A DNA stretch of 63,719 nucleotides, the filler included, from Reticulomyxa filosa (taxonomy: Eukaryota > Protista > Foraminifera), in NCBI GenBank assembly GCA_000512085.1. It is 26 parts of 26 records of this genome, joined end to end, with 100 filler letters (N's around TTAATTAATTAA, not from the genome) between each part and the next. Parts side by side here need not be neighbours in the genome. Positions count along the whole stretch, not along the records: positions 16,615 to 19,005 come from ASPP01019982.1; 25 more parts are not named here. One strand, written 5' to 3'. How positions within the stretch are numbered: the stretch's first letter is position 1; each line of letters opens with the position of its first letter. The notes below the pieces were generated by a model. It was not told where the DNA came from and did not search any database. It saw only the letters and a list, made by a program, of their open reading frames with translations. Made by a program: the position numbers and the translations under genes. Positions 16,515 to 19,105 of this stretch are shown here, piece by piece.

Positions 16515-17212
16515 NNNNNNNNNNNNNNNNNNNNNNNNNNNNNNNNNNNNNNNNNNNNTTAATTAATTAANNNNNNNNNNNNNNNNNNNNNNNNNNNNNN
16601 NNNNNNNNNNNNNNTTAATATTTTTTTTGTGCGTTCTTGTTGTTGCGTTGTGTGTTCTTTTGTTTTGCTTTTTTTTTTTTGTGGGAACAAAAAGGTCGAG
16701 TTTGTAACATACCAATACAAGCGAGTGTGTGCCACTGAGAAAAAAAAAAAAAGGGATTTGGGAAGCACAATTGTACATTTTTTTATCAGTTCGATTTGTG
16801 ACAGTGTATGGGTTTGATTTTCACCTTTCAGAGTTTGTTTTGCTGTGATGGTTCAGTTTTTCCATCAACGGGAAATCACACACCCAGACTGAAACAAAAA
16901 GTCGGACCGAGCTTCTAAACACTTGAATTGACGTTTTTTTGTTAGGAGACACAAGTAATATTTAGGTTTTTCATGCAGTAGTTGTACCTGAGCCATTTGA
17001 TAGTCAATATGCCAATCTACCCCGGCAATCAATTTCCAAAAAAAAGACTATTCCTGGATTTCTCTAGCCAAATAAAAAGATAGAGCAATTGCAAACACGC
17101 TTCGAAATTGTGTTTGACACAAAAAAAAGTAAAAAAGGGTAGCGTGAGAAAAAGGAAGAGAAAAAAAAAAGGGCTCATTCAACGATAAATTTAACGCTGT
17201 TCCTTTTTACAA

Positions 17213-18756
17213 ATGTCTAGCAGAACGTTGAAAATCTCAACGGAATTAAGTGAATTAGAAGAGTCAAAAACAGAACCAGCTGATGGAGGCACAGCTCCGC
17301 TTTCTGGAAGCAAGTCTTCTCGGCACCTGTCAGCAAACAGTAATGCAGGATCATCTTCAGACAAAGATAAAAACAAAAATAGAATTCGAAAACCCCGTTC
17401 TCAATCATTTGACAATAGAGAGAAATTGGAAGGCAAATCGGAATATTCTCAAAAGCAAGTAACGAGTAAAACACCGAAAGGGACAAACAAAACAATAGCA
17501 AGCGCATTCGAAGAAGAAAAGCTTGATTTAAAATCAAATGAAAAAAAAAAAGAAGAAAAGACTGGATTAATAGAATTAAATTTAAATGATGAAACAAAAA
17601 TAGAGGAATTAAAAACAATATTTGGAGAATTTGAAAAAGCATTAGAATCACAAAAACAAATATTAATAGACAACTTTTCAAAAGCATTAAAAACAAAACC
17701 AGCAACAGAAAATAAAATGTTATTAATAGACAAAGATGGAACAATTGCACGAATTCGTAAAATAGGTTTAATTACTGGCAAAAAATTTGAAGAATTAGAA
17801 ACTGAACAAAATTTAGCAATTGAAAAATTGAAACAAATATTACAATTTGAAACGGATGTCAATTTACAACATAAAAAAGCTTTAGAATTACAAATGCAAG
17901 TTGATAAAGAAATTCAAATCATTCAAGAGAAGCAAGCTATTGTTGATGCCGAATTAGCGAAGGTGCAACCTGCTATTGATGAAGCAAGAAAAGCTGTTGG
18001 AAGTACAAGTTAATTATTATTTCCATTAATTATGATATATGAAAATGTACATATCATATCATATCATTCATATTTATAGCTAAAGCGGATTGGAATGAAT
18101 TACGAACATATAAAAATCCGAAAGATGTTTTAAAAGCTGTAATGACTGTAGCTGTTGGTAAATATATATACATATACATATATATATGTATATATGCATA
18201 TATGCATATGTATATAAAAATATACTTTTCAAAAAATTAATACAATAATATATACATATACATATATCATATAGCTTTAGTCAAAAATGATCCTAAAATA
18301 CTTACTGGTAGCAATAGCAAAGATAAAAAATCTTCTCAAACAAAAACAGATGATAATTGGAGTGAAGTGAAGCGTGAAGTAAATTATGATTTAGTAAAAC
18401 AATTAATGAGCTTTTTAGATAATAATCAAGCAGAAACATTAGACGAAAATGTTGTTGCTATGATTAAAGAATATTTACAAACTGCTACTTATGAACAAGC
18501 TGTTAATGCTTCTAAAGTTGCTGGTCCTGTTTTTTTATGGATCAAATCTGTCATTTTTTATTCTGAATTAGTCGTCAAAATTAAACCTTTAAAACTTCAA
18601 ATTCAAGAACTTCAACTTCGTTTAACTGATAGAAAACAAGAAATGGCTTTACTCAAAGTTCAAGAAAAAGATTTAGCTGATAAAATACGAACTTGTCGTG
18701 GTGAAATGTTAGAAATGGTCGGTTATAAAAAAGTTGGATCTTTGTATTTTTTGTAA
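17213..18756 (+). CDS. Dynein heavy-chain stalk (CC1-MTBD-CC2) protein lacking AAA+ modules; about 451 aa, 3 exons
   Basis: Exons 17213-18008, 18080-18157 and 18275-18756 splice in frame (GT-AG) to give ...ELAKVQPAIDEARKAVGSTTKADWNELRTYKNPKDVLKAVMTVAVAL...DNWSEVKREV...YEQAVNASKVAGPVFLWIKSVIFYSELVVKIKPLK..., i.e. the dynein MTBD with both stalk prolines. Confidence 0.85.
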
Positions 18757-19105
18757 TATGTATTTTTTCTTTTTTTTGATTTGAATGAAAGAGAAAATGG
18801 TTGTGAATCGCATACTTTTCTAATTTGCTTTTCCGATTTGAGAGCCCACTTTGTCCAGTCAAAGTGGCAGTCGGCGCACTTCAAATAATCTTCCTATTAT
18901 TTCTTTGCAATGAATCAAAAGCTTTTTATAAAATTTCACTAAAAAAGCAAAACCTTTTTCTTGTGCAAGCATTGTTCAGACGCATTGTCATGCATCACTG
19001 TGATGNNNNNNNNNNNNNNNNNNNNNNNNNNNNNNNNNNNNNNNNNNNNTTAATTAATTAANNNNNNNNNNNNNNNNNNNNNNNNNNNNNNNNNNNNNNN
19101 NNNNN

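Follow-up and report, generated by a model that had tools for sequence, protein, structure and literature searches.

The window considered here is a 63,719-nucleotide stretch of DNA from the foraminiferan Reticulomyxa filosa (assembly GCA_000512085.1), in which 26 parts of 26 records are joined end to end with filler, and positions count along this stretch. The part at 16615–19005 (ASPP01019982.1) carries a gene whose product has the stalk and microtubule-binding domain (MTBD) of a dynein heavy chain but no motor; the gene and all features given below lie on the plus strand. Exon 1 (17213–18008; codons 1–265 and one base), exon 2 (18080–18157) and exon 3 (18275–18756, including the stop codon) join into 1356 nt, or 451 codons, with no internal stops. 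Both introns, at 18009–18079 (71 nt) and 18158–18274 (117 nt, TA-rich), are of the GT-AG type and in phase 1. An in-frame TAA stands at 17192–17194, 21 nt 5′ of the ATG, with no AG between the two. The joined exons served as a frame check only; homology searches of the window gene were done exon by exon, and the protein of an intron-free orthologue, P0002, stands in for the joined protein.

A search with exon 1 leads to RFI_07906 of R. filosa (P0001) and to P0002, a JGI protein. The contig of P0002 (L002) is intron-free; it opens with the same Met-Ser-Ser, reads through the two predicted junctions in register and ends at the same stop codon. We take its dataset to be a soil metatranscriptome; an intron-less gene is also possible, and either origin confirms the predicted joined frame. 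The donor of exon 1 agrees with the junction in L002 and with an intron position in the relative L001, which carries both introns at the positions found in the window. Exon 2 is identical to L002 at 25 of 25 residues, with 12 silent changes and 0 replacements, and exon 3 is 84% identical over 159 amino acids, with a matching stop position. A count over 260 codons, taken one exon at a time, gives non-synonymous (dN) and synonymous (dS) divergences from L002 of 0.084 and 1.23, respectively (dN/dS 0.069). The shared start, junctions and stop, together with a dN/dS of about 0.07, show that the window gene is not the product of decay or misassembly. An earlier note on this DNA, which had joined the same three exons behind the upstream TAA and argued against simple decay, is upheld on each of these points. 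It had also named the adenine run at 17541–17551 as a place where misassembly could undo the gene. Sequence on either side of this run aligns to L002 in a single frame; the reading frame is thus preserved through the run, and a frameshift there was rejected.

An ordinary dynein heavy chain reduced to a pseudogene fragment or by an assembly artefact would also give a short gene, and this explanation has been largely refuted already; we give it next to no credence. It could draw on the short contig, on frameshifts at or near A-runs in the three closest relatives (L001:1590–1610, L002:485 and 567, and L005:535), which may be sequencing error or decay, and on the lack of an RNA run with the exact gene. 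Among the RNA sequencing runs searched for the window gene none rose above 0.07. Opposed to it are the intact window copy with its low dN/dS, the recurrence, across many independent samples, of one start, module and tail foreign to dynein, and uninterrupted open reading frames (ORFs), some on long contigs and others from named transcriptome sets. That the window holds a real motor-less gene is, in our judgement, nearly certain.

The relative RFI_07906 has the same architecture, intron positions and stop, and is about 68% identical to the window over exon 3; it is a paralogue or a distant orthologue of the window gene. It has been named automatically as 'Dynein heavy chain coiled coil stalk...', and we found no characterisation of it beyond this automatic naming. 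The public gene model mis-splices around a frameshift and runs into intron 1. The window's own protein is absent among the matches in the protein collection, so that the window gene seems to be unannotated. Two runs labelled 'synthetic metagenome' (X1 and X2) contain 20% of the gene's words. Around the start codon, a pyrimidine tract and a TAG overlapping the ATG (17196–17220) resemble a 3′ splice site. The tract and TAG at 17216–17220 could serve as an acceptor. An upstream exon joined through it is disfavoured, the ATG context being the same in L002 and the flank showing no dynein similarity; an N-terminally different isoform may arise from it.

Dynein heavy chains hold the stalk between AAA4 and AAA5 of a six-AAA+ ring and, with tail and linker, reach about 4000 residues or more. 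The window protein has 451 residues and no AAA, and complete relatives, at 523–729 residues, are also far below heavy-chain length. The absence of AAA4 and AAA5 sequence, as claimed in the earlier note, is borne out by the non-stalk parts of 12 full-length heavy chains, which gave no match in either flank of the piece, while control loci were matched at E near 0. A downstream AAA5 exon was rejected, as the open runs past the acceptors extend to at most 54 residues and have no dynein match. Likewise, no Pfam AAA match was obtained in the window exons, in P0002 or in the relatives scanned.

A stalk without a ring could be one half of a split motor that docks in trans on an AAA ring which lacks a stalk and is encoded at another place in the genome. 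Basidiomycete fungi have split dynein heavy chains, in which the stalk stays with AAA5-6. In the window, the chain ends 56 residues past the second stalk proline, short of the AAA5-AAA6 that the stalk half of a basidiomycete-type split retains; no search was made for a partner half. The idea might relate to the bidirectional transport reported in Reticulomyxa, where both directions look dynein-like (PMC2288898). We consider a split motor very unlikely, since no AAA sequence occurs in any family member or neighbour and non-dynein motifs cap both ends of the stalk.

The dynein-derived part has the order CC1-Pro-six helices-Pro-CC2. Stalk CC1 runs to the first stalk proline at 17780–17971, with 64 residues from a conserved glycine; helices H1 and H2 of the MTBD, including the conserved H1 glutamate and arginine, are encoded by exon 2; H3 to H6, as far as the second stalk proline, lie at 18358–18585; and CC2 occupies 18583–18720, with 45 residues between the second proline and a glycine of the tail. 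Against the Pfam MT family (PF12777), exon 3 scores 19.4 bits (E 6e-4), under the curated cut-off, P0002 scores 29.5 bits (cut-off 24; E 5e-7), and relatives reach E 8e-18, which agrees with the earlier forecast of an MT match with no AAA. The best matches in the PDB are dynein stalks, at E 1e-4 for exon 3 and, weakly, at E 0.011 for exon 1 residues 190–264 to CC1 of dynein-1. The evidence for the fold comes from predicted models of the relatives P0002 and P0006, which stand for the joined window protein. The P0002 model (mean predicted local distance difference test score, pLDDT, 92; predicted template modelling score 0.78) matches the dynein-1 stalk 5AYH with Z 20.2 and a root-mean-square deviation (rmsd) of 2.2 Å over 242 residues. 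The P0006 model agrees with the same fold, and the two models match 5AYH with Z 20–21.

By sequence and predicted fold the window protein has a genuine dynein stalk domain, without being a dynein heavy chain. Cytoplasmic dynein-1 (PF12777; 5AYH, 3WUQ) shares with the family the order of elements, the predicted fold, about 22–30% identity, the H1 Glu/Arg and the H6-loop lysine. Unlike dynein-1, the family is without tail, linker and AAA1-6, and has a shorter stalk with non-dynein caps and an insert between H2 and H3; the H6 arginine is lost in the window's subfamily. The earlier description of the MTBD as complete stands in part: the domain is complete with both prolines, but at 144 residues it is some 18 longer than the 126 of dynein-1, and the H6 arginine has become asparagine (the next lysine is kept). 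The insert (18283–18354) adds about 19 residues at the position of the flap, and ranges from 0 to about 380 residues in relatives. In axonemal dyneins a flap at H2-H3 contacts the next protofilament, and that of DNAH7 also flattens the lattice (PMC6629372). The family resembles the flap dyneins (DNAH7, dynein-c) in having an H2-H3 insertion, but it is nearer to dynein-1, and its insert is unrelated in sequence, variable and without a predicted beta-hairpin.

The lengths of CC1 (64) and CC2 (45) do not vary among those members of the subfamily that could be scored, even though identity is about 30%, and these constant lengths and the capping motifs fit a constrained register of the predicted stalk. 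The fixed affinity proposed earlier is not established by this, because microtubule binding itself can shift the stalk register, favouring the alpha register (PMC4298687). At the interface, the H1 glutamate (13/13) and the H6-loop lysine (18/18) are kept across the family alignment; they align to E3390 and K3472 of Dictyostelium, contacts named in PMC4298687. The net charge of the window MTBD is +2, within the dynein range (mean +2.9, standard deviation 3.1), whereas sister subfamilies have +6 to +13. We consider it probable that the window protein binds microtubules.

The N-terminal portion, which the earlier note took for about 170 disordered residues, has to be divided: only about 115 residues are of low complexity, and a conserved module follows. 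The leader (amino acids 1–118; 17213–17566) is rich in serine and lysine, has a basic patch at residues 46–95 (net +8), and contains a K-P-R-S-Q-S-F motif (17390–17410) in common with L001 and L002. The module (amino acids 119–189; 17567–17779) is non-dynein and consists of a strand, an amphipathic helix (17597–17677) and a strand-helix-Gly motif (17720–17779); it is predicted to be folded, with pLDDT 80–90 in the monomer model of P0006. In a sister subfamily the module is longer and matches TRIM coiled coils (TRIM3, E 2e-5; Brat, 0.003; KAP1, 0.03), and the window module aligns to it with an hhalign probability of 83.5 (E 8e-6). Judged by these profile matches, amino acids 119–189 are probably related, via the sister subfamily, to the coiled-coil/L2 dimer region of TRIM proteins. 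Among the ESM Atlas neighbours of the sister-subfamily module there is a TRIM-like cluster (score 0.90), which is a lead only. The pre-stalk module of this sister subfamily is like the coiled coil plus L2 of TRIM/RBCC proteins (TRIM3 8AMR, Brat 6J9R, KAP1 6H3A) also in its place just before a C-terminal effector. The family differs in its truncated coil, which in the window's subfamily is strongly shortened, and in having a dynein stalk as effector. RING and B-box gave no Pfam match and no Cys/His pattern, and by its domain content the window protein is not a TRIM protein. At the other end of the stalk, a family-specific C-terminal motif (18694–18753) is kept down to about 30% overall identity and, in the window's subfamily, ends 11–13 residues past a conserved glycine. 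It is plausible from the models that the N-module and the C-tail cap the stalk base.

Relatives of the same architecture, whose existence the earlier note had suggested looking for, are found in several foraminifera, so that its lone gene becomes one member of a family of several subfamilies with a conserved module resembling the TRIM coiled coil and a conserved C-tail. An exhaustive search with P0002 ranks short proteins above all heavy chains, and these share a pair of non-dynein motifs N-terminal to CC1. The named members, taken partly from MMETSP transcriptome sets, come from R. filosa (the window's subfamily; Reticulomyxa has two paralogues) and from Elphidium margaritaceum, Bolivina argentea, Nonionella stella and Ammonia (sister subfamilies). 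In L007 (12.5 kb), L009, L010 and L013 the copy is a single ORF that is preceded by stops and has genes unrelated to dynein beside it, and L012 holds an intron-containing copy 3′ of a ubiquitin-protease gene. The non-stalk parts of the 12 heavy chains show no similarity to any family locus, and the metagenome scan yielded only two ordinary heavy chains, L003 and L004. The family profile favours dynein-1 (E 1e-51 to 1e-45) over dynein-2 (1e-37) and axonemal dyneins (1e-25), and by this measure the family is closer to cytoplasmic dynein-1 stalks than to either of the others. In two trees, both quick searches without bootstrap and without a verified foraminiferal dynein-1, the second omitting long-branch rows, 23–25 motor-less stalks of the foraminiferal type form one clade (SH-aLRT 99 and 96) beside the dynein-1 stalks. 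With its dN/dS, the breadth of the family and the lack of AAA sequence, the gene is the domesticated motor-less dynein stalk that the earlier note had supposed. In the openly readable literature we found no description of the family, and the domain architecture and gene family are real and apparently undescribed.

Several other proteins were seen alongside these. A further subfamily inside the clade (P0015, P0020, P0027, P0032 at L013:7016–7930, P0071 and P0111) has other N-termini and short stalks, and P0027, from Bolivina, has two MTBDs in tandem. The subfamily of P0013, P0016, P0153 and P0176 carries a conserved N-terminal helical domain of about 80 residues, SAM-like by eye and with no Pfam match, and its MTBD is more basic, with charges of +9 to +13. 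An ORF of 2673 residues (L007:409–8430) lies 5′ of the family member P0007, with no Pfam family recorded and no dynein similarity. Outside the foraminiferal clade, on long branches, are the motor-less stalk proteins P0043, P0146 (L014:3695–4891), P0131 and P0029; P0146, a single ORF, is surrounded by genes unrelated to dynein, and P0029 carries two stalks. The placement of these out-of-clade proteins suggests independent origins.

A comparable motor-less globular domain occurs in a Toxoplasma intraconoidal microtubule protein (9YA2 chain L, residues 1207–1457); in each of the two models it covers precisely the MTBD portion on superposition, with Z 9.5–10.6 (at Z 10.6, rmsd 3.0 Å, 124 residues, 10% identity), a middling Z for a helical domain. 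From its residue range and size, chain L is probably ICMAP2, which is dimeric and required for keeping two microtubules joined (PMC12819142). In contrast to the foraminiferal family it has no stalk and binds between protofilaments, and there is no sign of shared origin; the structure paper makes no mention of dynein similarity (PMC12819142). The superposition indicates that chain L is possibly an unrecognised motor-less MTBD linking microtubules. In the bovine sperm axoneme, 9FQR chain Xl (residues ~1333–1496) also matches the MTBD part, with Z 10.8–11.7 and an rmsd of about 3 Å. Row 7 of the ESM Atlas results is an oomycete cluster of proteins of about 398 residues with Impact_N and PF12777, a possible further motor-less MTBD fusion. 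Motor-less MTBD-like domains elsewhere make the idea less unique and the reading as a passive binder more plausible.

We propose that the window gene belongs to a functional foraminiferal family in which the distal stalk and MTBD of dynein-1 are joined to a TRIM-type coiled-coil/L2 segment and act as an ATP-independent clamp, a reading whose chances we see as evenly poised. Gene structure, lack of an AAA ring, purifying selection, family breadth, affinity to dynein-1 and the predicted stalk/MTBD fold support it; microtubule binding, the dimer and the register we infer. The N-module and C-tail would stand in for AAA4/AAA5 and close the shortened stalk at its base, and no ATP cycle would then drive the register. 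The MTBD would dock at dynein's usual site on tubulin, with help from the basic N-terminal leader and from the insert at the flap position. The TRIM-like helix could then pair two chains, as the coiled coils of TRIM proteins do by forming antiparallel homodimers (PMC9732051), and the resulting bivalent clamp would bundle or space reticulopodial microtubules, incidentally competing with dynein. Engineered SRS-MTBD fusions (3ERR, 6RZB, 6RZA; PMC6629372) are alike in that a dynein stalk is carried on a base which is not a motor; there, the CC1/CC2 length sets the register, and microtubules are bound without ATP (PMC6629372). These are laboratory chimeras with seryl-tRNA synthetase, whereas the window's family is natural and selected and has another base.

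Some observations weigh against this proposal, beginning with the limits of the trees given above. The H6 arginine, present in 44 of 49 dyneins, is asparagine in the window's subfamily, and H3 is acidic there (−2, against a dynein mean of +0.4); the two could weaken or abolish binding. They favour, along with an MTBD charge below that of the sister subfamilies, an alternative in which the fold is kept and the window's subfamily no longer binds microtubules well, serving instead as a scaffold or decoy for regulators that bind the stalk or MTBD, while other subfamilies remain binders. We think this improbable, as the charge is inside the dynein range, the H1 Glu/Arg and the H6-loop lysine are retained, and exon 2 (H1-H2) has accepted silent changes alone. 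The pairing of chains is the other point in question. A direct PDB search with the N-module of the window's subfamily gave no match; this module falls far short of a TRIM coil in length and leads to no TRIM on its own, so that the link to TRIM is a two-step one. The tail, too, is modelled differently, as a beta-hairpin in P0006, where the N-module is included, and as a helix in P0002, where it is absent. A monomeric microtubule-associated protein, in which the N-module only caps the stalk, could stabilise or mark the lattice, tether cargo via the leader or block dynein's site, with no cross-linking. The reduction of the TRIM-like helix to about 27 residues, undetectable directly, and the confident folding of the module in a monomer model fit such a protein. 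Sister subfamilies retain a longer, clearly TRIM-like coil, however, and the helix has kept its hydrophobic face, so that a monomer is the less probable arrangement, though a better candidate than the decoy. For a dimeric cross-linker, we see the case as about balanced.

The dynein MTBD is regarded as a component of the motor, and the only versions without a motor that we know of are fusions made in the laboratory. A naturally occurring family under selection would demonstrate that domestication can turn the MTBD into a passive binder of microtubules. Taken together, and with a confidence that falls just short of even, these proteins may be a hitherto unrecognised class of microtubule-associated proteins, in which natural dynein stalks without a motor are mounted on a dimer base of the TRIM type, have expanded into several foraminiferal subfamilies, and cross-link or reshape reticulopodial microtubules, their affinity being adjusted through the length of the stalk and the inserts at the flap position; recruitment of motor-less MTBDs as passive binders has possibly happened several times in protists. 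The subfamilies are not alike in the flap insert or in the charge of the interface, and together they would offer a natural series in which to study the register of the stalk and the affinity of the MTBD with no ATPase present. Which proteins bundle and remodel the microtubules of foraminiferal reticulopodia is a question still called unresolved (PMC13371060), and the family would supply small, expressible candidates for that role.
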